DNA of 64,000 nucleotides from positions 52,638,001 through 52,702,000 of the forward strand of contig OZ038378.1 of NCBI GenBank assembly GCA_964036045.1, given 5' to 3'. Shown piece by piece: positions 1 through 35,066 of the stretch; within the stretch, counting starts at the first letter, position 1; each line of letters starts with the position of its first letter. The notes beneath the pieces were generated by a model, which did no database searches, was not told the origin of the DNA, and saw nothing but the letters and a program-made list of their open reading frames with translations. The position numbers were made by a program, and so were the translations under genes. This stretch comes from Eutreptiella sp. 'Long Island Sound 2002'. Taxonomy: Eukaryota; Protista; Euglenida.

Positions 1-2610
1 GACATGCAAGGCACATTGTTTAACCATAGTGCACCCATGGAACATGTCAAAGTCCGGGTGCAGGCATATTTACAACCGGCCAAAATGGGGGGGTTCCGCA
101 CCACGCCCTAGAACCGCGCATCCCAAAACCCCCGCCGATAACCATCGCGATAACTAGTTGGAGCGTGATAACCTAGTGCGTTAAAAGTTAGACCACTCGG
201 TAAGAGCGCGATAACCGCCACGATAACTAGTCAGAGCAGGGGTTAGTGCGCACTATTCACACCTCATGACCTGGGCACATGCCTCTGCCTGGTTCGTTGT
301 TGAGGTCGTCTAGCGCGAGGTTCACCCTGCGTAGCCACATGAAGTCCGTCACGGGCACATACTCCTCCACCTGCCTCGCCGTGAGAGGACACAACCAGGG
401 TCAGCCCCTCGACCTCGGGAGGCACTATGGCCACCCATACATTCGCCTGCCCACCACCAAAATGATGGCCACCGGCACCTTCCTCCCAACATGCTCCTCC
501 ATGCTAGGCTAGGGCACTGCCTCCCCATGGACATGGCACACCTTGGCTAGCGGGCACTGGTCGGGGTGCCCTACCACCCCCCGCTTGGGGTGTCCCACAG
601 TAAGGAGGTGCATAGCAACCCCGCCTTACTGAGTTGGATGCTGACCACCGCCCCCATGCATGTGTCCCACTTGAATTTTTCCACTTTTGGTGATGCAATG
701 CACTATCCTACATCTACGCAAGGGGTGTATAACGCCCCCCCCCAAAACAAAACTCCATGACACCGCAATATGCCGAAACCGCCCAATACTGAGTAACCCC
801 CCTTATTTACCCCCTTACGAACCCAGTAACCCAACTCAATGAGGGGGTTTACCAACACCCTTACTACCTGCGTGTGCCGTGTTGTAAATGCCATTGTGAC
901 ATGGGTAGGTTGGATGGCTGAGGAGTGGGGTACAGCCGACCGCAGCAAGCGGCAAGCTATAAAAGAATTACATGCTCTTTGGGAAGTTGAGGCTATCCCA
1001 CTTGCAGAACGCTTGCAGCAAAAAAAAAACGAAGGAAGGCAAGTTTGGTTTGACCTCCAGTGCCATATCCTGGGGGAATCGCAAAAAGCAATAGAAGTTG
1101 GTTGCAATTTTGAGCAACCACTTCCCGTTGGAAGTGGTCGCCCCAAGTGTCAATGCGTGCCCACATTGCCATTTAGCTATTGATGCGGTCTTTTGCATCT
1201 ATGTACAGCTTGTGGCAGGAAAAGGATTACTTAACCCCCACTCAAGTTGCTCAAGCTCCAGACCACGCCGGTCAGGTTGGCGAGTGCATGTTGGACTGCC
1301 TTGGGCTGGAAGCCCACACCACGAGCCCATTGGCCCGCATGTCATAGTGGGAATATTTTGGGGATGTATTGTGTTTGTACATGTTCTCAAGCATCCCCAT
1401 CGAGTAATACACGCAACCGGACCTTTAAGATTCGGTTGAAAAACTCTATGACAGGGTGGAGCCTAAAGAGGCCGAGAGGAACGCGCCGTGGCATGGCCCA
1501 CGTGATCAAAACGGATGCACTCGCATTAGCTGAACAAATGAGGAAGGCCAAGGAAGGACAAGGGCAGGCCTTGTTGGCACGCAAACGACGAAGCGCAGAG
1601 TTATACATATGATATTTGCTTGATTCTTTGTGCTCTGATGTTGCTTTGGTGGAAACTCAATAAGGGGGGTCAATAGGGGGGTTAATGAGGTAGTAAGGGG
1701 GGTCACTAAGGGAGGTTGCTATGGTAGTAAGGTGGTTCATGAGGTAGTAAGGGTGTCGGTAAACCCCCTCACTGAGTTGGGTTAGTGAGTTAGTAAGGGA
1801 GGTAAATTAGGGTGGTTGCTGAGTATTGGGCGATTTCGGCATATTTTGGTGTCATGGAATTTTGGGGGGGGGATTATACACCCCTTGAGCGGATGTAGGG
1901 TGGTGTATTGTAGCACCAAAAGTGGAAAAATTCTAGCAGGACACATGCATGGGGGGGGGTGGTCATTATCCAACTCAGTAAGTGGGGGTTACTATGCACC
2001 CCCTTACTGTGGGACACCCCATGGGGGGTGGGGGGGCACCCCGACTAGTGCCCCTTGGGTAGGGTGTGCCATGTCCATGGGGAGGCAGTCCCCTAGCCCA
2101 GCATTGAGGAGCATGTCGGGAGGAAGGTGCCGGCGGGCACCATTTTGGTGGTGAGGAGGGAAATGTATAGGTGGCCACAATGCCTCCGGAAGTTGAGGGG
2201 CCGGCCCAGATGGTGGAGTGTCAGGAGCAGGCAGGTGGAGGAGTGTGTGCATGTGCTAGACTTTACGTGCATGGCTACGGAGGGTGAACCTCGCGCTGGA
2301 CAACCTCAACGAGGAACCCGGCAAAGGCATGTGCCCATGTCACCAGGTGTGAACAGTGCGCACTTACCCCTGCGCTGGCTAGTCATCGTGGCGGTTATCC
2401 GGCTCTTACCAAGTGCTCTAACTATTAACACACTAGGTTATCGCGTTCCAACTAGTTGTCGCGGGGGTTATCGGCGGCGGTTATGGGATGCGTTGTTCTA
2501 GGGCGTGATGCGGAACCCCCCCAATTCGGGCCGGTTGTTAATATGGTTGGAACCCGGATTTTGACATGTTCCATGGGTGCACTATGGTGAAACAATGTGC
2601 CTTGCATGTC
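1..2610. mobile_element. Foldback-like element with ~870-bp imperfect inverted arms (1-870 vs ~1740-2610) and a decayed coding spacer; may extend left of the window
   Basis: 1-50 (gacatgcaaggcacattgtttaaccatagtgcacccatggaacatgtcaa) is the reverse complement of 2561-2610 with one mismatch; arm homology continues inward to ~870/~1740. The spacer holds only broken ORFs (839-1183, 1247-1612). Confidence 0.85.
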
Positions 2611-3519
2611 TCATTTGCTCAATATCGCCCGTTTTGCGGTTTTTTGCGTTTTCCTCTTTTTCTGCTCTAACTGGTTAGAATAGGGTGAGTGCATAGTTAC
2701 TGCGAGGGCTATCGTGCAATACCGTCGTTATCGCGTGGGTTATCGCAGTAGTTGTCGCGGAGGTTATCGCGTTTCGTTTGCTGTTGTTCCAGGGTCCCCC
2801 TCTTGGTATTAGACCTCGAAATTCTTGATCATGGTCCTTGCCGCCGCTCATGCTTGGTGCGATCCCCAACAAAAGCTCCTTGGTATTTGTCGCCTTGGCG
2901 GACCATAGGGGTTTATGATGGGCTGACACCTCGTCGAGCCGCCGTGTCACGGGTAATTTTGAGAAGGGTGTGGATTTTGGACTCACCATCCATAAGTCTG
3001 CCTTACTTACTGAAGACAAAGCCCGCATGCTTCTCAGCAACTACATCTTTGAGTTGTGGGAGGTAAATCCAGGGGATGCTAGATTTCGAATCCACGTCCA
3101 TCCGGAGGGTATGGAGGTGCTCGTGGAACATGTCACGGCCCAAGCCGGGAAGGGTGCAGGGACGAAGGTGCCCTGCATGTGGGCCATGAGAAGGAGGAGG
3201 ACGACGATGAAACGGAGGAGGAAGGTGAGGAGGAGGTGCGTGGGGGGGTGGGGGGGTGGGCAAGAGGAAGGACAAGCCCCACCACCCCGTCATGATTACT
3301 GTGCAAAAGGTAAGAATCAAGCCTCGTAAGGGGAAGGGGAAGGCTGATGGTTGGTTTCCTCAACCCCCAACCACAACACCCGCTGGGTCCTGGACCGAGG
3401 ACCCAGAAACCAAGCTCCCTATCCACTCGCTTTGCGCCACAAGGGAGTGGGAGCGTGAGTGGTATGGGGTCACCATTGCCAACATTTGTTCGGGGCAAGG
3501 GGGTGATTCCTTTCCCGGT

Positions 3520-4353
3520 TGAGGCCACACCTCCCCTTCTTGGAGAGGCCAACAAAGTGGTTGAGGCAGAGCCCAAACGGGCATTTAATAGGGATCCAAG
3601 AGATCTTGTGTTTTACACCAATGGGGATAGTTTGGGGGTGAAGAACTTGCTTGAGCACTATTTTCTGAGTCATGTGCAGCTCGAGAGTCTTTTGGAAGAC
3701 TTTGGGAAGGTTCCTCTCATAGAGAAGGCAGCCATTTTCAATGAGAACCCCCCCATTCTGGGCAGGCCCAAGCATTGAGGGGCCCGCTGCACTATTTTGT
3801 TTGTGGTGGCCGCAACCACCGCAAGCACCACCCCCATATATTTCACGATTTGCCAGTTCTCAAAAGGATCGCACATCGTGTCTATGCCATGGCGAAGAAG
3901 GGGGTGGGGGCTGGTGGTCCGGTGGAGCTGCACCATTCTGGACATGGACAAGTCGCGTGCTGTGACCACACCCCGCAGCACCTGCATCGTGATGTCCCCC
4001 GCTACACTGTGCTTGAGAGCACTTTGATTCTTCATTGTTTGATGATGCTTGCACATCATCATGAGGCCGAGGATGGCTTAGATTTTCGCTTTGTCCCTTC
4101 AAGTAGTTCCGGGCTCCCGGACCCTTGGGTGAAGAGGGCTGTAACCTTCAAAAGCGGCACTGCTTTTTTTTTCAATGCCCTTGATGTCCACCGAGGGTCG
4201 GGGATTCCAAAGGCCTCACCCACCGGTGAGGCCGATCCCCGACTCATGTCATTTTTTGCCATTCAGCTAACCCAAGCCCCTATTCTCGGGTTCCCCAACC
4301 TCCATGTCTGCGATGCCATCAAGCGGCCCACAAGGGGATGCATTAAGGCCTAG
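3520..4353 (+). pseudogene. PhyH-like 2OG-Fe(II) dioxygenase, one frameshift in a C-run near 3750
   Basis: ORF 3775-4353 has PQHLHRD (HxD), FRFVPSS, KSGTAFFFNALDVHRGSG (distal His) and PRL (Arg), the order expected for a double-stranded beta-helix 2OG oxygenase. Upstream ORF 3347-3778 (...AIFNENPP) joins it by a 1-nt shift. The 5' boundary is approximate. Confidence 0.7.
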
Positions 4354-4989
4354 GTGCCAAGGCGCCCGCGTGTCAGGGGGGGGTTAGCTGCAAGGGGAAG
4401 GTCGTAGCCAAGTGCTACGGTTGCGACCGGGTGGGTTGGTGCACGGCATACAATGATCGGCTGTGCGTGCCATGCCAAGAGGGGGAGCGCTTAGTGTGGG
4501 GGGAGGAGGAGATTTGGGGGGGAGGACCCCAATGGAGTTAGCATGGAGCAATGTACTCAATGCTTCCTCCTGGTTCGAACAACCACCGCGCATTGTTTGT
4601 TGAGGGGCTGGGTGGGAGGGTGGGGGTTGCCCGCCTCTCAACCCAGAAGGTGGAGAGGGTGGCAGGCCACCCCGACCAGTGCCCACCGGCCAAGGTGTGC
4701 CATGGGGCGGCACTGCCCTAGCGCAGCCTGCAAGAACATATTGGGAGTAAAATGCCGGGCACAATTTTTGTGCTGAGGGGGGAATGTATGGGGGATTGGC
4801 CAAGGTCCCTTCGCAGGTCGAGGGGCTGGCACGGGTGGTGGAGTGGAGTCGATCAAAGGAGCACGCGGCCGTGACACACTTCGTGTGGCTGCGGAGGATG
4901 AAGCTCATGCTCAAAGACCATAGGAAGGAGGGCAAATGCATGTGTCCATGTCAGCAATTGTGTGAATGGCGTCTGCTCTAACCGCCACT

Positions 4990-5345
4990 CTGGTTTTTTG
5001 TCAATTCCCTCCTCACCCACACGCCACAATCCTCCAACTGCCACACCTGTTCACGAAGGAGGTGGCCGAGGGAGCCGTAGCACTAGCAGCTGGAACAACA
5101 AAAGCAGCAGAAGCATGGGCCGCCACGCCGGTGGCAGCCCGTGAGGACCTGGAGGTCGAGGAGATCAAGAAGTTGGGGGAGGGGGCAGCGTGGAGGTGGG
5201 GGGAGTCGGCGGATGACGCTTGCCGGCAAGGGGGGACACAATGGTACCACCAGGGGACCATCGTGGCAAAGGAGGTGAGGTGGAGAAGAACATTAACCTC
5301 ACCCTCCCCTCCTATGTCTGGTCGCGTGGGGCGAAGCCTTTGGCC
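4990..5345 (+). repeat. Decayed coding-like segment, copy 1 (LEVEEIKKL..GAAWRWGE..DD.CRQGGTQWYHQGTIV)
   Basis: Homologous to 5760-6110 at both DNA and peptide level. Confidence 0.6.
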
Positions 5346-5759
5346 AAGTGTTTTGCCTTGTTTGTTCAATGAAGGAATGGGGTGCACAATAACTACCCGC
5401 GATAATTACGCGATGACCGAGTGGTAGCGCGATAACTACTGCTCTAACTAGTTAGAGCAAGGGGCTCTATATGTGCTCTAACTTTGCTCTAACTCAAAAG
5501 TGCACCTTGCCCCCCGAGAATCCACCCCTATGATGAGGGTACCTTGGGGAACAAGATTTGATAGGGGCTTTTTGAGGGTGCCGAATCCATTTTTTGGGGT
5601 GATTTGCCCCACAAATGAGGCTACGTGGGTGTTCTAGAAATTATGCGCTAACTAGGGGTTCCGCACCACGGTCTAGAGCAGTGCATCCCATATCGTGTTC
5701 GAACTGAGTTACGTGGAAGTTATGACGGGAGTTACTGCGTGTTTTTTTGAGTTTTTTTC

Positions 5760-6110
5760 GCAATTCTTGTCACCCACAGACCACTATCCTGCACCTGCGC
5801 ACGTGGATTCGAAGGACATGGGCGAGGCAGTCGCAGTAGCAGCACGAGAAGCAGCAAGAGCAGCAGGAGCAACAGGAGGACGGACCGCCAAGCCGGTGGC
5901 CGGCGGCGCAAAGTTGGAGGTGGAGGAGATTAAGAAGCTACTGCAGGGGGCAGCCTGGAAGTGGGGGGAGCGGTGGGATGAGGCGTACCGGTAGGGGGGT
6001 ACGGGATGGTACCACAAGGTAACCAACATGGAAAGGGGGGGGGTGGAGAGGAAGACAAACGTCATCCCCCCCCCTACGTTTGGGTGGGTGCGGGAAAGCC
6101 CTTGGCCAAT
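5760..6110 (+). repeat. Decayed coding-like segment, copy 2 (LEVEEIKKLLQGAAWKWGERWDEAYR*GGTGWYHKVT)
   Basis: Direct repeat of 4990-5345; a TAG replaces the CAA(Gln) of copy 1. Confidence 0.6.
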
Positions 6111-24729: not shown

Positions 24730-26745
24730 ACAAATTCCTACAAAATTGGTATGAATTTCGTACCAATTTCGCACGAATTCGCCCCACTTTCCACTGTTTC
24801 GCTCTCCTACAACTCTCACAGCCTTTCTTTGACAATGTCTCAAACTCTTTCCCATCTTACGTCCCTGCAATCCCATCCCGATGCTGCTGCTGACAGCCTG
24901 GCGCGGTATCAAGCCCTGCCAGTTGCCCATCACCATATGGAGGAGGCGACCTACCAGCCCAGCGCCCTCACAATGGACGATGTAGTGGCCTGGGCAGCAT
25001 CCCTGGTGCTACCTCGGAGGTAACTCACATTGATTTGTGCAGCCCCTCGCGCAAGTCTTATCTTGGGGGGAAGGCCTGGTCCACAAATTTGTGGAGGGAA
25101 CTCCGCTTCCGGGTTCCCTGCGTTCGTTTTTTTTACCCCCTACCCCAACCTTCCACCATGGACCAGTTGTTGAATGCCATGCGTACTAACCCGGTGGGGA
25201 AGCCCAAGGACGCCCACGTCCACGTGTACCCCAGCACTAACCTGGTGTATACCCCCCACCTGCATTGCGACATGGTGTGCCTTCAAGATCTTGCTACAGG
25301 GGCACCACTTGACGATTCTTTTGTTCCCTTCACTTGGCACCTTTAGGTGGTGGGAGGATTTGGGCTTGGCCCCTTTCCAACCCACCATCCAACCAAAGGT
25401 TGGGATGTCGGAGATCACCCACCCCACTTTCTACAGCACCACTTCTTTGCAATGGTTCCGGGGGTCCTCATGTGACCCTTGCTTCATTTCAAGTGAACCC
25501 CCCCAGCTGCTGTTCAACGCCGGGGTGAGTGAGGAGCAGTCAAGGGATTGTGAAATCCCCCGGCGTTCGCAAAGCAAAAGCTCGCTGGGGTAGGGGGTGG
25601 GGTGGGGGGCCTTTTCAAGAAGTCCCACCCCCCAAATCGTGGAAAGTGTCTTTGAGGTCGGGAAGCTGCACCCAATGACGCCGGGCATCATCGTTGTCGC
25701 AAGTATTGGGAGTGGGGCCTAGCTCCTCCACAATGAAGTTGCCACAGGTCCTAAGGTGCTTCCCCCTTACGACAGGAACATCTCGGGTTGTCACCGGAGT
25801 AGTTTCCTCTGCCTTTCGGAGGAGTACCAGGTGCAGGTGCAGACGGGGACGGCCCTGGGGGAGGCGGTGGAGGTTCGCTAGGATACCATTCACCTGCACA
25901 TGGGGGACATGCTGCTGATGGTGGCCACCAACCGCCACCGTGGGATGCCTGCCCTCCCGGGCGCCAAGGATGCGCTGCAGGGGGCCGGTTTTAACTTGTG
26001 GACCCCCGACGCCAAGCACCGTCACCAGCAGCCCAACACCACCCACCTGGACCCCACCCCCCCTCCTCGAGGCCCTGGGCGTCGCTGGGTGTTTGTCTAG
26101 CTGGGACTGCCCAAGCGTGGACCAGGTGTTGTGGGTGGGGAAGGGGGCGGTTGGGAGGGTGGGGTTGTGGGAGAGAGGGATGCTGCCCAGGCCCCCTTCG
26201 CCGACGCCCCCAAGGCGGTCCCGGCCGGCCCCCCCACCTGCCACTATCACCCCACCTTTCTCTCCCGCTCCGCCCCGGCCACCGACCTTGCCGTGATGGT
26301 GGCCGCGAAGCACTCGGTGCTCTTTTTGTGGGGCCCGTACACCAGATCGAGATCACCAAGGGGGACAACGTGGATGCGGAGTCGGAGATGCACTTCGCCA
26401 TCTCCGGCGTTACGCCCCCGCTGCGGCCGACCATGTTGTGGCGCCTGGGCAACACTGCCCTAGCGTGGCGGCCCCCCAAGTGCACGAAAGCTGAGGCGTG
26501 CTAAATCACCTGTCCGTGTGATTGCAAGGTGTGCCCCCTGTGCATTCGTGTGTGTTTGCTTGCTGTGTTGACAAATTGGACGAAATTCACACGACATTAG
26601 TACTAATTTCGTACGAACAAACGTCTGGGCAGGTGCACATGTGTGCAAATGTGTGCATATAGAAGTTTTTGTGAAATTGGTTTGAAATTCGTATGAAGTC
26701 CGTACAAAGAGGTGCGAATTTTGTCTAATTTGTGTACCGTTTGCG
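24730..26745. mobile_element. Putative non-autonomous unit bracketed by inverted gaaatt/gtacgaa motif clusters, carrying a second 2OG-Fe(II) dioxygenase relic
   Basis: The reverse complement of 24737-24775 (gtgcgaaattggtacgaaattcatacc...) matches 26671-26700 (gtgaaattggtttgaaattcgtatg). Confidence 0.45.
25620..26504 (+). pseudogene. PhyH-like 2OG-Fe(II) dioxygenase relic with a downstream extension
   Basis: A single frame from 25621 reads QIVESVFEVGKLHPMTPGIIVVASIGSGA*LLHNEV...CLSEEYQVQVQTG...R*DTIHLHMGDMLLMVATNRHRGMP...GAGFNLWTP, giving (Q)xLHxE, GDMLL and HRG motifs. Both stops are TAG, where CAG and TGG would fit. Confidence 0.62.
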
Positions 26746-26749
26746 TTCC

Positions 26750-28140
26750 GTTCAGGTGCAGGAGACCGGTGAGGAGAGCGAGCGGGGCAAGGGATCCGGC
26801 GTTGGACAGGCCCCAAGCGCAGCCTGAAGTGAACGGAGCGAGGGGTCCGCGCGCTCAGGACGCAATGCCGGGGGTCGAAGTGAGGCAAGCTCGGGTGCGG
26901 GGCGTGGGCAAGGGGCCGGATGGGAGGTGATGATCCCCATGCCGGCGCGTGAGGACTTGGGCACCGCCCACCTGGACCACCCCCTTGGCCCGGGTCACCC
27001 TGGCCGGCAGGCCGCCGGAGCATGGTTGGTAGCACAGGGTGGTGCCCGGGCCCGACGGGCGGTAGCGGCATCTTTCTGCCGTATGGGAGGTGACCGTGAG
27101 GGCCCGAGGGGTGCACGCGGACCTCCGCATCCGCTTCCCCTGCCACCTTGTGATCTGGGGGGGGTTCCAACCTGCCCGGGGCAGGAGCCGGTGGGCATTT
27201 TTGCCTACCGGCTGGTGAGCGGGCACTAGAAGGTGCAAACGGGGGTGGCGGGGATTCGGGAGCATGGGACGGTGACCACGGCCGGCATCATTGCGCCGGC
27301 CGCGGTTAGGAGTGGTTGGAGGTGGCATGGCTTGCCATGCGCGTCCATGTGGGGAGGATGCGGGGTCAAGGGGGGGGGGTGACGTCATTGACGTTGAGGG
27401 ACAGGAGGACGCCCCCTCTGCCCCCCGCGCCAGGAAGCGGAAAGCCCCCGCCCAGCAGACGCAGGTCTGTCCGCCTCCAAGGCCCCGCGTACAGCGGAGC
27501 GAGCGGCACGTGAGCGGACGAGAGGGGGTGTGGCTGAATGGGTGCAGGAGCAGCAGAAACACAAGACGCGGTGGGTCCGCGCGATGAGCGCGGAGACCGT
27601 GCAGCGCGACGTGGAGGCGCCAGTTGCTAAGGCGAACGAAGATAAGCGGGCTGCGGAGGTGGAGCGTGACGCTCTACGCCGGGACAAGGAGCGCCTCACT
27701 GCCAAGGTGAAGACCTTGGAGCGGGAGGCGGCACAGCGGGCGAGGGCCACGGGTGGCATGGCACCCGGACCGGCGGCAGAGGGGAAGGCCGAGGGCCCGA
27801 CGGCCGAGAGGGGGGGGGGAGGCCTGTCGGCCGTCGAGGGGCGCCCAACGCCGCCGGCAGTCGGTTCCTCTTGGCCGGAGCGCGAGCATGGCATGCACAG
27901 GCAAAGACGGCGGCTGGACAGATGTCGGCCGTCGCCAGGGGCTTGCGCATGGCCATGCTTCACAGCCAAGCGCAGGTCCGGGTCGCGACGGTGGCACCCG
28001 ACCTGGCCAAGGTCACTACTGCCCACGACCAGCTAGCGCAGCAGTAACCCCCCCCCGCCGCCGCCTCACGGCGGCGGCGATGGAGGCCGCCTTTGCGGCG
28101 GCCGAGGAGCAGAGCTCCCAGGGCTCCGCTGGCCAGAAAT
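26750..28140 (+). pseudogene. GC-rich decayed ORF(s) with a coiled-coil segment
   Basis: 27530-28036 has VQRDVEAPVAKANEDKRAAEVERDALRRDKERLTAKVKTLEREA. Neighbouring frames are broken at G/C runs. Confidence 0.3.
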
Positions 28141-28779
28141 CGGGGTGTAATGGCCAGCATAGGTGGTTGGAGGTGGGGGGTGGTCACGAGGCATTGCACC
28201 ACGATACAAATAAACATGCCAAATGTACCGGTCCTGAGCATCACACAGCAGATACAATTTTACCCCCGTGGTATGGGGTTTCCGAGGGAGAAATTGTCTA
28301 AATAAGAATAGGCCCTTGTGTGGGACGATAGATTCATCGCCACACACAATGTCACCTAATACCCACCCATTCTGCCATTGTTCGGTGCACAGCTCAATCA
28401 GGGCATCCACATCCGGATCCGCGAAGCGCTGCAACTTGTAGAACGCCCCACGGTCCGGGAAGAGGTACTCCATGTAGGGGTTGTAGTACATGCTATCCCT
28501 ATCCCATAGGTCATCAATGCGGCGGGGTTGTAGCATTCCGAGACCTAATCGGAAAAGGATGTAGTAGGGAAGCAAGGGGACTAAGTCGGCATGCCCCTTG
28601 GCGCGGAGGCAAATGTCCATGCACTCCATGATGGGCCGCATCATGTACTCATACACTGTGACTGGTGTGTCCGCGGCGCGTGTACCCTCCAATAGGCTGG
28701 TGCCTCGTGCAACACCTTGGGTGAAGTCATACAAAGCCTCATCAGGATCCAAGGGACGCGGTTCCCAATCCGATTGCAT
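28141..28779 (-). pseudogene. piggyBac-like (DDE_Tnp_1_7-type) transposase, 3'-truncated
   Basis: GDESIVPHKG..FRQFLPRKPHTTGVKLYLLCDAQDRYIWHVYLYRG is the typical piggyBac core. ATG at 28779 has a polypyrimidine tract plus CAG 10 nt upstream. Homology ends near YAGHYTP, before the later catalytic Asp residues. Confidence 0.88.
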
Positions 28780-28826
28780 AGTGATTTGACTGCAGAAGAG
28801 GGAAAAGGAAATTTGCTGCACAAGCT

Positions 28827-28969
28827 GCACAAACTGCACGAATTGGCCAGACCGCCCGGTTCGTTTCAGTTTACGAGAAGACCGGTACAGACCGGTCCGC
28901 ACCGGTCCTTGAACAAACTGCACCAATTCATCTAAACTGTCCGGTCCGAGCAGTTCATGCAGTTTATGC
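28827..28969. repeat. Hairpin/MITE-like intronic repeat upstream of the transposase acceptor
   Basis: Ends gcacaaactgcacgaa and ttcatgcagtttatgc are inverted repeats; a ~55-bp core is nearly identical to the core of 29528-29671. Confidence 0.8.
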
Positions 28970-29257
28970 TGGTTGTTGATTTTTCCTATTTTTTACCTCT
29001 TTTCTTTTTATTGTCCAATGATTTGCTACTTTCTATTTGTATTTCTATTTCTATTTCTTTGGGAGGGGGGGGGGAGGGCATGGAGGGGGGGGGTGGCCTC
29101 TTCCTCACAGACTGAGAAGGTCACATGCAATGGGCATTGTAGCAATCCGTTGAACAAACAACATGGGTCCCAATGTTTGAAGAAAGTGTTGTAGAAGCGA
29201 ACACCACCAACGGCATGGCTCACCACGGCAACACCAAGGAAAAGCGGTCCGGGGTGC

Positions 29258-30804
29258 TTTAAGCAGTGCCTGGGACACCAGAGCCAAGGCCAGCATCAAC
29301 ACCCGCATCACCACCACCCGGCCCGGAATCATCGGGATCATCGGGCTCATCATCCTCTTCTGAGCATCCAATTTAGCTTGCAATTGGGCCTCCATTTGCC
29401 TTTGCTTCAGCCGGAACATCGGGTTCACCTTGGTGTTCCCATTCTTCGTGTACCCGCGCACAGAGGCCACCTGCAGCTGCAACCCCTGAGTGCTTGTGTC
29501 CTCAGCCTGGAAAAAAATGCAACAAACTGCACAAACTGCACGAAACGCTCGGACCGCGCGGCTCGTTTCAGTTTACGAGAAGACCGGTACAGACCGGTCC
29601 GGACCGGTCCTTGAACAAACAGCGTAAAACGATCTAAACAGGTTGGTCCGATCATTTCGAGCAGTTTATGCACTTGATACAGTTAACACCTGTGGCTCGG
29701 GATCAATTTCCACGTTTTCCTCAATTTCCTCTTCTTGCTGGGCTTCTTTCTCCTCTTCTTTCTCCTCTTCTTTTATCTCCGTCTTTCCTCCATTGCCTGA
29801 GCTGGCGGCTCCCACTCGCACCTGCAGTGTTATGTTGTACAACGTTACGCTACCCCATGAAATGATAACCACAACCCCGCTACATGGCAACAAACCTTCG
29901 CACTCCGCAAGGCATCCAACTCTTCTTGGAGCCGTTGCTGCTCCCTCTTCTGCCCGGTCACGCATCAGCTGGTCCGCCTGCTCCTGCGCCTCGCGCGCCT
30001 CTTGCTCCTCGCGCGCCCGCTCCAGCTCCTGCCTCTCTCTTTCGGCCTGTGAGAAACAACGAAATGGGACAAACTGCACGAACTGCACGAAACGATCGGA
30101 CCGGAAAGTTCATTTGACTTGGCACAGAGACCGGTCTGGACCGGTCTTGTACAAACAGCATAAACCGATCGAACCGATTGGACCGGACAGTTCGTCTCAG
30201 TTGACACAAAGACCGGTCTGGACTGGTCTTCGAACAAACAGTGCAAACTGCGACAAACTGCAAAAACAGACCTCTTCCAAGGCCCATTGATGCTTTGCTT
30301 CCTCCATTCTTTCCCATTGCCGGGCGAACCAAGGGATCGACGGGATCTCCGCCAAGAGCTCTTCGGTGGTATGGGTGCTCTCCAACGGTTCCTCCCAGTT
30401 GGCATCCGGCAGCTCCCCTTGACGCACCTATGGGCATAAAGGGTTAAGAAAACGAAAGGAACAAGACAAGTCGAAGGGGTGGGGGGGACAATTGATTACC
30501 TGTGTAATCTCATGCTCCGTCCGACAAAGCTCACGGCGCAGCAACTTGTACCGGTTCCGCACGTCCGCAGTCGACACATCCTTCAGCGGGGGCGTGAGGA
30601 GGTCAAGCAACCGCTTCACTGGGGACTGATGGGGACGGGGGGCACCGGTTGCGCCGGTCACGGGGTTGCGGCGGGGGTTGGATCGCGATGAACGGGAGGG
30701 GCTGGGGTCGCGCGGCGGGGAGTAGGGGTCGTAGTCCCCGTGGTCCCGGTCTTCTTTCTTCACCCCACAGCCTCGGCACTTCCCGATGTTGCGCAAGAGG
30801 TCCT
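29258..30804 (-). CDS. Five-exon accessory gene co-oriented with the piggyBac transposase (exons 30804-30500, 30427-30272, 30046-29921, 29821-29690, 29506-~29258); Glu-rich, probably one frameshift in the last exon; 5' exon not found
   Basis: All four internal introns are GT..AG with pyrimidine tracts, and all four junctions are phase 0 and keep the frame open (...RTEHEITQ|VRQGELP...WALEE|AERERQE...APRR|VRVGAASS...PEPQ|AEDTSTQG...). Confidence 0.7.
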
Positions 30805-31894
30805 CTGCAGAAAAACAACACAAAAGCGTATAAACGGGTCGAACCGGTCGGACCGCGCAGTTTAGCGCGTTTTATGCAGTTTGTTCAGCTCAACATGAGA
30901 TAATGTCGCCCTTGACGACACTTGTCTAGTTGCTACAGTAGACTATGACAAAAATAATGACAATTAGAATCAGGGTTGGCCCATCACATGGCCATGGCAC
31001 ACTCAGGTTACCAGCCAGATGGGTGTATTTCTGTACTGTACTGTATTCTGTGTTCAGTTCCATTGCTGCCCATTCACCTATTTCATGGTTGTCTTCTACT
31101 TGATGTGCTGAGGTGCCATTTCCGTGGAGCTCATGGAGAACAGCACGCACTGATTTACCAGTCAGGTCCAGTTCAATTTCCGTTCCCTTCCATTTTGCTC
31201 TGTTGCAGTCCATTGCTGTTTTTGTGTGGTGTGTCCAGGTGGTTACACTTAGGACAGTTTTCCCAGCCAAAGTTGCCAGTTGCGTCCTTCATATTATGCC
31301 TGCCACAACCTGCCGTGCAGAGAGACAAAAATGGTGCAGGCAAAATGACAGCTTGCAGTTCTTTGGCCGGATGTGGGTGCCTACACTGATACACTGCCTG
31401 CGCTGTGTTTAGCCAGTGGCAGACAATGATAGCATACATCCACAGATCAAAGGCACTTGTGCATTGTACTGTTCCGACCTCTGCCCTACCCTCCCTCCCA
31501 TACCCATACCCCTCCTCCCCTTTGTCCATCCCCCTCCCCTGATGGGGGGGGGGGGCGTCACCTGCTAGTTCCCGAAAAGAACACATCAGTGTCATGTTGC
31601 ACAGGACTACGCAGCTGTGAGACGTTCCCAAACATTGCCAGACGTGCACCCAAAGGTGGAAAGCAGCCTGCAGCAAAGCTCGCTGTAGCCAGCTCGTCCA
31701 TCCCTGTTGCTGATGGGCAGAATGTACCGCAGTTCAAGACTATGTTGGACCGTACTAGGGCGTTTTGCACTGTCCCTGTTCAGCAGTAGGGACAGGCAGA
31801 CAACTGATGAATGGATGCAGTGCATTGTGAATTTTGCTTTTTTGCATCATGTGCATGGCGCCATCAGCATCTATGCATGTCAGCGTGTATCACA

Positions 31895-33728: not shown

Positions 33729-35066
33729 TGCATGCAGCAACAAGACACAGAACTAGCCCCCTCCCCCATTTTGCCCCGCTTTTTCTGGCTCTCAAGCTCA
33801 TGTGGGAAGTCATGTGTCACGTTGATGCAATCATGCATTGTGATGTGCCGCAATGTGATAAATTTATAAGGGTGTCAAACAGGGTGCAGGGCAACTTCCG
33901 CCCGCTGGGCGCGACTGAAAACGAAAACTGCAGGTGGTTGATGGGTTGCATCAGGGCCTCCTGAGTGAATAACGGTAGAGGAGTCAGTGCCAAACTGCAC
34001 TGTGCATGGCATATGAGTGGGACATGCACCTGCTAAGGGAATGCCGTGCACACAATGCGCACGTAGTGCGCATGCCGTGCAAATTTTTGTATGCCGGCAA
34101 CTACTTGAACCCTAGTTTTGGCCCTTTTTCACAAGTTGATTGTTCCATAACAGGTTTTTTTACGCTTCTTGTGCATGGAGGATATGGCACATTTGAATTG
34201 CCACCTATTTTCACCCATTTTCAGCCATTTTAGCCCATTTTCACCCGGTTTTGCTGCACATTCTTTGTTATAGGTGGATGGCGGATAATGATGATGGCGA
34301 ATCACCGGACGTCGTGCATATTTACAATGCAACAAATCGGCAAGTGGGTTGCGACACACTCCTAAGCAAAGTCCAACCTTCATGGCCATTGCCTTGCTAT
34401 CTCTCAGAAGCGATGTCATTTGTGTACTCTCTTTATGAGCTAGCACTTGAACCCCACATCCGCACTCGAATCATCGCAAATCAATAGCATGGCTTATCTA
34501 TAACGGCCCACAAAGTGCTGCATATTGCTACAAGTTGGGCCCCAATCGGGTCAAGGCAGAATGCCTATGTCCCCAGAAGGCTGCCACCATCTTCCAACAC
34601 ACTCATGCAACAGCAGATTGCGCTTGGCCACGGCCACCAACCACCAAGGATATGAAGACCCTTGCGACGCCTGCATGATTTCCTCCCTTCCTCCCCAGCT
34701 AGGTTTTGTTGTGTGGGCATTGCACGCAGTGCCCACGCAGTGCGCATGCAGTGTCCACACAATGTGCACAGTGCGCACGCAGTGCAACAACTTGGCCTAA
34801 TGCAAGCATCCAGACCAGAGTCATTTATTGAAACACGGAACGCAGGGACTGTAGTTGTCACTGCAGCCAAAGATATGACTACGGGAAGCAGTAGGACAAC
34901 AGGAAGAGAAATGCAAATGGTAAAAGGGTTGAACATATTTACTGAGCCTTCAGTGTCTTGTCACATGAAAATGGGGATGGGGGGGATGTATTACCATGGA
35001 GGTTCACTGTAGCTCCGGCCAATCAAATCTGACACTCTTAGCCACCCCTCATCCATGTTTCTGCAG

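Follow-up and report, generated by a model that had tools for sequence, protein, structure and literature searches.

The window (the whole stretch of DNA analysed, 64,000 nt) carries on its minus strand a truncated and degenerate copy of a two-gene piggyBac-type transposon, which spans 28142-30887 and corresponds to positions 1840-4638 of a 5840-nt reference copy (L064:1836-7675). Aligned with more than 20 other copies it is 88-94% identical, and every alignment ends at 28142 and 30887. Its 5' break falls in the core of a repeat module in intron 0. With frameshifts in two exons, 4 and 6, this copy is a dead fragment. An Rfam scan of the window returned only a short LSU rRNA fragment, at 34337-34402. 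The parts of the copy, including the palindromic repeats that we call modules, are as follows.

28142-30887, minus strand: truncated, degenerate two-gene piggyBac-type transposon copy
30805-30887, minus strand: 3' part of intron 0, with a half module (30824-30887) and acceptor AG at 30806-30805
30500-30804, minus strand: accessory gene exon 2, with an open frame and splice sites; dN/dS of 0.42 against a diverged subfamily
30428-30499, minus strand: intron 1, 72 nt, GT-AG, without a module
30272-30427, minus strand: accessory gene exon 3, 52 codons, phase 0 at both ends; dN/dS of 0.17
30047-30271, minus strand: intron A, GT-AG, 225 nt; two modules in tandem fill it, and their cores are 30129-30146 and 30211-30228
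29896-30046, minus strand: exon 4, coiled-coil-like, frameshifted here (151 nt, versus 168 nt in intact copies)
29822-29895, minus strand: intron 3, 74 nt, GT-AG, without a module
29690-29821, minus strand: exon 5, acidic and of low complexity
29507-29689, minus strand: intron B, GT-AG, 183 nt; apart from a pyrimidine tract and CAG it is essentially a single module
29259-29506, minus strand: exon 6, the last of the accessory gene, frameshifted here; in intact copies a stop follows ..VPGTA
28790-29258, minus strand: spacer between accessory gene and transposase gene, with one module (28820-28969), a pyrimidine tract and CAG (AG at 28791-28790)
28142-28779, minus strand: 5' part of the piggyBac-type transposase gene, beginning with ATG 28779-28777 and truncated within the DDE domain

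Full copies of the element measure 5.5-5.8 kb, are bounded by a 12-bp TIR and ATAT flanks, and contain, beside the transposase gene, an accessory gene of six exons and five GT-AG introns. The association with piggyBac that had been proposed from the window was borne out by matches to PF13843 (DDE_Tnp_1_7) in a full copy (E = 2e-25) and in the window fragment (E = 1.3e-13). A Cys-rich tail at the C terminus of the transposase, short TIRs, and a 4-bp palindromic flank are further likenesses to the piggyBac superfamily; the second, six-exon gene and the internal palindromic modules set the element apart from it, as do the flanks. ATAT stood on both sides, as a duplication or a terminal palindrome, in nine of the 11 copies, full or MITE, whose flanks were readable on both sides, in place of the TTAA target-site duplication expected of piggyBac.

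The modules of the window are imperfect palindromes of ~150 nt, homologous to one another, found on the minus strand just 5' of four acceptors. Units 28820-28969 and 29522-29671 align over 150 nt with 84% identity, and a tandem pair occupies 30062-30146 and 30144-30228; at 30824-30887 there is only half a unit because the transposon copy ends there, which is not a biological feature. Each core repeats the palindrome GACCGGTC two or three times, at 10 bp spacing, and these repeats are AGACCGG sites set back-to-back. This core pattern matched nine places in the window (0 expected), all within 28880-30228. The features that the original prediction had read from the letters, namely homologous, hairpin-forming, intronic repeats 5' of the acceptors and an exact 18-bp palindrome at 29592-29609 inside intron B, are all present in the sequence.

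The fourth acceptor calls for a different reading. AG 28791-28790 is followed after 10 nt by the transposase ATG (28779-28777), and since a stop codon ends the upstream gene before it in intact copies, it is probably not the acceptor of a cis intron. An "intron C" joining exon 6 to the transposase gene was not supported, given that stop; near the end of exon 6 there is no good phase-2 donor, and the ATG follows 10 nt past the acceptor, although exon 6 may hold an alternative donor. This AG is probably an outron or alternative acceptor. The repeat lies where it was said to lie at all four sites, and the fourth probably does not end a cis intron.

The exons of the accessory gene are real coding sequence, with a dN/dS of 0.35 in frame and about 1.4 off frame in a comparison of subfamilies. 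Subfamilies were used because divergence from copy to copy is the same in exons and introns (4-5%), as neutral decay would produce, and is uninformative about selection. Between subfamilies, introns diverge less than synonymous sites (0.18 versus 0.28); the introns are constrained. Across the junctions from exon 2 to exon 6 in 21 aligned copies, donors are GT in 21/21 and acceptors AG in 20-21/21 each, except for the intron-0 acceptor, which is AG in 16/21; the junction of exons 1 and 2 was examined in L064 and L045. Phases are compatible at all five junctions; intron 0 in full copies is 198 nt long, with a GT donor and a phase (1) that matches exon 2. In protein searches, run one exon at a time, exon 2 retrieved from 1.84 billion protein representatives no hits other than unspliced ORFs (P0001-P0003) and a single, unrelated repeat protein, a result that speaks neither for nor against splicing. 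Exons 2 and 4 were not detectable in a distant accessory-gene family, in which hits resembling exons 3 and 6 stand some 605 nt from each other, for example at C1:54866778-54867706 and C9:48731023-48731951; further relatives lie at C6:14600667-14612613.

Folding supported the claim that intron 29689-29507 (intron B) forms a long hairpin. With its GT and AG ends it reached -74 kcal/mol (z = -6.18), a value equaled by 0 of 200 shuffles, compared with -56.6 kcal/mol for the antisense strand; G-U accounts for 9 of 63 pairs, and the stem begins within 0-8 nt of the 5' splice site and stops 11-12 nt short of the 3' splice site. In L064, the intron A modules gave z scores of -4.3 and -5.6, while the module-free equivalents of introns 1 and 3 were without structure (z = +1.28 and +0.57). 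The z scores of the intragenic modules (-4.3 to -6.5) were clearly better than those of the subterminal modules (-0.5 to -3.6), which hints at an additional RNA-level constraint or a younger age and counts against the reading of the modules as protein docking sites that we develop below. The sense strand folded better than the antisense strand in four of the five intragenic modules; the fifth, in intron 0, is inverted, and there the antisense strand folds better.

These properties could mean that the hairpins have a function in RNA: the intragenic modules are the best folders, sense folding exceeds antisense folding in most of them, the intron B stem reaches close to both splice sites, and nonconventional introns of Euglena need pairing of the intron ends for splicing (PMC12501133). 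We nevertheless think such a function unlikely. The module also occurs outside introns, in both subterminal regions; two introns of the accessory gene are unstructured; canonical GT-AG ends with pyrimidine tracts make pairing unnecessary in principle; and in L064 the 5' splice site itself lies hidden within the stem. Strand asymmetry (G-U versus A-C) was rejected as proof of selection on RNA, since it tracks module orientation in eight of nine modules and is reversed in intron 0, as expected of one inherited trait rather than of repeated selection.

In descriptive terms, introns A and B answer to the definition of euglenid intermediate introns (GT/GC-AG ends plus a structure joining them), with GT-AG in 20-21 of 21 copies. 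Like the intermediate and nonconventional introns of euglenids, they have a stable RNA structure that can join the intron ends and reside in a genome that appears to be of Euglena type (PMC4770533, PMC3935182, PMC12501133). Nonconventional introns have noncanonical borders, lack a pyrimidine tract, and pair positions +4 to +6 with -8 to -6 (PMC11282704). The introns described here instead have canonical borders and pyrimidine tracts, no such pairing was seen, and +4 to +6 of intron B read TTA, not CAG. Their stems also differ from those of structured euglenid introns in extending over tens of base pairs and in being built from a transposon motif.

The original prediction had gone further and proposed a portable, introner-like unit. 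In one form of such an origin, introns 0, A, and B would have been created by copying of the module into a continuous exon, the splice signals coming from its terminal 9-mers (GT-starting on one arm, pyrimidine-rich and ending in GCAG on the other). The makeup of the introns offers some encouragement. The module of intron B extends from +1/+9 to -12, so that the intron is little more than module and pyrimidine tract, and its donor GT directly abuts the outermost 9-mer; the GTGTG at this donor fits the published 5' splice consensus of Euglena (PMC11170887). Non-module sequence in module-bearing introns amounts to ~12-45 nt, compared with the 72-74 nt of module-free introns; this remainder, smaller than a normal short intron, is unlike what insertion of a module into a preexisting intron of normal size would leave, and on this point the docking-site reading is at a disadvantage. 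An origin of structured euglenid introns from MITEs is, moreover, a standing hypothesis (PMC3935182, PMC12501133).

Other observations make an introner-like origin of these introns distinctly unlikely. Family TIRs and ATAT flanks are absent from all intron borders, which are ordinary AG/G; homology between introns stops short of the donors, and intron A holds two modules. Each of the 21 aligned copies has gaps of the size of introns A and B, and subfamilies still show them at protein identities as low as about 60%; the hairpin introns appear, from these alignments, to be old and stable. The presence/absence polymorphism that had been suggested as a check was not seen, as no copy or subfamily was found with an uninterrupted exon at an intron site. 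From coordinates alone, a single copy was judged to be without intron A; as 12 nt of exon are missing there too, it is read as a microhomology deletion rather than as an empty site.

Genome-wide searches bear on the same question. The core pattern matched 552 times (control, 0) and a pair of 9-mers 175 times (control, 1). We fetched ~29 places on C1 and C2, drawn from the first 100 places of each match list, and all ~29 proved, among the matches listed, to belong to the family, whether as full copies, deletion derivatives, truncated fragments, or MITEs; neither a solo module in unrelated DNA nor a module in an unrelated gene was found among them. A genome-wide introner family was likewise rejected: queries with the whole intron, the core pattern, and the 9-mer pattern led, among the matches listed, to the transposon family only, and hairpins 5' of AG acceptors in unrelated genes, a search for which had been suggested as a check, did not appear. 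The module is private to one two-gene piggyBac-type family. Because it is family-private, subterminal, and without TIR or ATAT borders, it is largely confined to the element in the manner of subterminal repeats; its presence in three of five accessory-gene introns is, however, not ordinary for such repeats. Introners and introner-like elements have been described in Micromonas, Aureococcus, dinoflagellates, Amoebophrya, and fungi (10.1101/2022.06.06.494994, PMC11282704). The module shares with them a repeat common to several introns, a unit nearly coextensive with the intron, and an inverted-repeat structure, but it is not dispersed among unrelated genes, lacks TIRs or target duplications at its borders, has no empty sites, and occurs outside introns in the same transposon.

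Within a full copy, 9-10 modules are found: three 5' of the accessory gene, five internal (one in intron 0, two in intron A, one in intron B, and one in the spacer that leads up to the ATG of the transposase), with one or two more at the 3' end. In the reference they lie at 188, 444, 677, 1826, 2504, 2586, 3180, 3866, 5664, and possibly 5795, so that about half are outside the accessory gene, in both subterminal regions. Their motif is shared with the element ends. L064 contains 28 AGACCGG sites where 1.26 would be expected (22-fold enrichment), in phase at 10-bp spacing and always inside the element, in clusters 30-55 bp inside both TIRs and in every module core; none was found in the exons or in 4 kb of flanks. 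Deletion junctions also fall at modules: 1839 is fused to 3094 in L077, the copy in the window begins at 1840, and the ~720-bp MITE, which joins 3218 to 5684, consists of reference segments 1-218, 1709-1912, 3088-3218, and 5684-5840, that is, both element ends plus two modules.

Such junctions could suggest that the modules have no function: excision followed by ectopic repair and template switching would have spread them inside the element, and they would have persisted where neutral, with the hairpins and the sharing of motifs with the ends as historical accidents. The equal decay of exons and introns among copies would suit this explanation too. We hold it to be very improbable, given the enrichment and regular phasing of the motif, the retention of modules in MITEs, and the slower change of introns than of synonymous sites between subfamilies.

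Because the core motif also lies inside both ends and the module is family-private, the modules look like docking sites of the element rather than a portable intron. We favor, with moderate confidence, the interpretation that they are arrays of cis-acting sites belonging to the element itself and are tolerated only in positions that splicing clears. The AGACCGG arrays, scattered over the whole element, would most likely be docking sites for the Cys-rich tail of the transposase or for the accessory protein. Within the transcribed region, modules would survive where they are harmless, in three of the five introns and in the spacer that precedes the start of the transposase, and those in introns would leave the transcript together with the spliced intron. 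Because of their palindromic layout, the pre-mRNA would form long hairpins in which the splice sites come near each other; this pairing would be a by-product and may also help splicing. The repeated modules further serve as breakpoints for the internal deletions that give rise to the ~720-bp MITEs.

Binding-site repeats near transposon ends are textbook knowledge. Cut-and-paste transposons carry subterminal repeats such as the 12-bp motifs of En/Spm, bound by TNPA, and the AAACGG hexamers of Ac/Ds, and piggyBac has internal repeats bound by its Cys-rich domain. As in those systems, the motif described here is short and family-private, occurs in direct and inverted orientation inside both ends, and is kept by nonautonomous derivatives. 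What differs is that arrays also lie deep inside the element, as ~150-nt palindromes that nearly fill three introns and occupy the spacer. Motif arrays in the form of long palindromes within introns of an element's own gene are not textbook, and they suggest that introns can serve a transposon as a safe place to store cis-acting DNA. Deletion between modules in turn explains how gene loss leads to MITEs in this family.

For euglenids, transposon-built GT-AG introns with the potential for end pairing are now placed in the lineage. Its structured introns have long been suspected to derive from MITE-like DNA of no known source element (PMC3935182, PMC12501133). If RNA data showed dependence on the stem or intron creation by modules, this link to MITEs would become directly testable. 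A more speculative idea, to which we give little credence, is that the modules are splice-competent cassettes: their terminal 9-mers would supply a GT donor and a pyrimidine-rich CAG acceptor, and a module inserted in an exon would be removed as a structured GT-AG intron. If so, transposons could plant their own binding sites inside their genes, and structured euglenid introns could be traced to a concrete source, MITEs that carry modules and land in host genes, in line with the long-standing hypothesis of a MITE origin.

The repeats, palindrome and hairpin intron of the window had been described accurately. On the minus strand of 28000-31000, successive open segments are separated by GT..AG gaps, and a repeat finder aligned 28820-28969 with 29522-29671 at 84% identity across 150 nt. 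It also returned further units of the same imperfect palindromic module:

30062-30146 and 30144-30228, tandem module units
30824-30887, half module unit

An exact palindrome was confirmed at 29592-29609, and the core pattern of the module occurred nine times in the 64-kb window, where none was expected, always inside 28880-30228. The intron at 29689-29507 (minus strand; intron B) had a predicted fold of -74 kcal/mol (z -6.18). Two other features of the window were recorded: a 66% G+C block (26000-28000), whose two strands both carry long, overlapping open frames and which directly adjoins the truncated end of the element copy, and a 66-nt match to eukaryotic LSU rRNA just at the Rfam gathering score (34337-34402, minus strand; 50.2 bits).

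With the whole of intron B as the query, the 2.28-Gb assembly gave >400 candidate matches, of which 40 were scored; these had 87 to 93% identity, and all of them lay within copies of the entire 28142-30887 stretch, none being an isolated intron. Longer loci revealed an element of 5.5 to 5.8 kb that ends in a 12-bp terminal inverted repeat (TIR), and one copy, the minus strand of L064:1836-7675 (5,840 nt), served as the reference. The last large open reading frame (ORF) encodes a transposase of the piggyBac type (PF13843, E 2e-25) that has a Cys-rich tail. A second gene, the accessory gene, is located upstream of this ORF; it has six exons, and its introns are named 0, 1, A, 3, and B in order. 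Exon 1 (L064:5952-6870, minus strand, ∼306 codons) contains an acidic low-complexity stretch and had no Pfam match at E 0.01. The window copy corresponds to reference 1840-4638, with both ends cut and frameshifts in exons 4 and 6. Of 11 copies, full or MITE, with both flanks readable, 9 have ATAT at either end, in contrast to the canonical TTAA flank of piggyBac; the ATAT-flanked loci include L060-L064 and the MITE loci L033, L034, L049, and L058. Beyond ATAT, the flanking sequence differs between copies; ATAT may be a target duplication or a terminal palindrome.

A full copy carries 9 to 10 homologous modules, at these reference positions:

188, 444, and 677, upstream of the accessory gene
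1826, in intron 0, inverted
2504 and 2586, in intron A
3180, in intron B
3866, in the spacer before the transposase ATG
5664, at the 3' end, plus a remnant at 5795

Introns 1 and 3 have neither module nor structure. Each module consists of outer 9-mer arrays, a GGTCCG/CGGACC pair, and, at its core, two to three GACCGGTC palindromes spaced by 10 bp; the 7-mer AGACCGG makes up this core. In L064 this 7-mer has 28 sites against 1.26 expected, all within the element, where they cluster in every module core and 30 to 55 bp from both element ends; the exons and the 4 kb of DNA flanking the element had none.

Exon 2, searched against 1.84 billion protein representatives, matched only genomic ORFs that are unspliced, which speaks neither for nor against splicing. 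Sequence comparisons give good, albeit indirect, support to the predicted accessory-gene introns. Across 21 aligned copies covering exon 2 to exon 6, donors were GT in all, and each acceptor was AG in 20 or 21, except that of intron 0 (AG in 16). The five junctions from E1/E2, checked in L064 and L045 only, to E5/E6 are all phase-compatible. Donors match the published Euglena consensus GTGTG, and acceptors match its pattern of a pyrimidine tract plus CAG (PMC11170887). When exon segments were compared with the diverged subfamily L045/L048 (∼80% DNA identity), dN/dS was 0.35 in the proposed frame; the two alternative frames gave 1.44 and 1.37.

Four acceptors had been claimed, and a homologous module does lie upstream of each, but the one at 28790 is set apart. 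In intact copies a stop closes exon 6 after ..VPGTA, no phase-2 donor of good quality was found near the exon 6 end, and an ATG lies 10 nt past the acceptor; we therefore read the stretch ending at 28790 as the spacer between two genes. Because Euglena outrons share the acceptor pattern of introns (PMC11170887), this AG may serve as a spliced-leader (outron) acceptor. A T-run and TAG likewise follow the module that precedes the ATG of the first gene.

The original prediction took the module for a portable, introner-like intron. Genome-wide, the core pattern had 552 matches (control, 0) and the 9-mer pair had 175 (control, 1). All of the ∼29 places fetched on two sequences of the genome, C1 and C2, were full copies, internal-deletion derivatives, truncated fragments, or an ∼720-bp MITE, with no solo module in unrelated sequence; single core-motif matches were mostly copies of this MITE. 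Among these places the module was thus largely confined to one element, the alternative named with the prediction itself. An introner-like origin would fit the sparse non-module sequence of module-bearing introns (∼12 to 45 nt, versus 72 to 74 nt in total for plain introns) and the intron B donor GT, which lies directly against the outermost 9-mer. Neither the family TIR nor ATAT was found at intron borders, however, and gaps of intron A and intron B size are kept in subfamilies down to ∼60% protein identity. With no solo module at the places fetched, no TIR or ATAT at intron borders, and gaps that persist across subfamilies, the dispersal among unrelated genes, insertion signature, and empty sites that define introners are not seen here.

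A distant accessory-gene family has exon-3-like (39 to 41% identity) and exon-6-like (36 to 37%) segments ∼605 nt apart, at the following loci and at least 7 more:

C1:54866778-54867706
C9:48731023-48731951
C11:21517204-21518132

The open frames that contain its exon-3-like part span 182 to 297 aa, so its gene structure differs. In one copy of the piggyBac-type family (C4:10839366-10839677), judged from match coordinates only, exon-3 and exon-4 matches abut in the same frame, and intron A is seemingly gone together with ∼12 nt of exon, a loss compatible with microhomology deletion of a palindromic intron.

Deletion junctions coincide with modules. L077 joins reference 1839 to 3094, and the window copy starts at reference 1840, within the core of the intron-0 module. 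The MITE consists of two ends and two modules (reference 1-218, 1709-1912, 3088-3218, and 5684-5840) and joins 3218 to 5684, equivalent points of two modules; its copies (L032-L034, L044, L049, L057, L058, and L066-L074, about 1140-1900 in each) are 88 to 96% identical to the parent segments. In L077 (2157-3590, minus strand), where the intron-0 module is joined to the intron-B module, exon 1, the chimeric module, and exon 6 form a 477-aa open frame. The window copy ends at reference 4638 (window 28142), and in an unrelated deletion derivative (L075:3197-3207) the sequence picks up again at 4642, where a short filler is duplicated; reference ∼4638-4642, inside the transposase gene, may be a recurrent breakpoint.

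Between subfamilies, introns differ by 0.18 versus 0.28 at synonymous sites, indicating some constraint on introns. We infer that a protein encoded by the element docks on the AGACCGG arrays, which would be kept wherever noncoding DNA permits and spliced out of the mRNA. An added role in RNA is possible: predicted folding is stronger in intragenic modules (z -4.3 to -6.5) than in subterminal ones (z -0.5 to -3.6), the intron B stem covers nearly the whole intron, and four of the five intragenic modules fold better as sense than as antisense strand. In 8 of 9 modules, however, this strand asymmetry goes with the orientation of the module, and intron 0 shows the reverse; the asymmetry therefore amounts to only one inherited trait.

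Cut-and-paste transposons carry subterminal binding-site repeats, which by analogy would be the closest counterparts of the putative docking arrays; what is new here is that the arrays form palindromic modules filling introns. Descriptively, the module-bearing introns fit euglenid "intermediate" introns, which combine canonical borders with end-pairing (PMC4770533), and do not fit nonconventional introns (criteria in PMC11282704). A MITE origin has been proposed for euglenid structured introns, with the source element still lacking (PMC3935182, PMC12501133); on present evidence, this piggyBac-type family does not supply it. The observation is real and the introner reading is unsupported: the repeat is a family-private module of an end-proximal motif, stored in introns.
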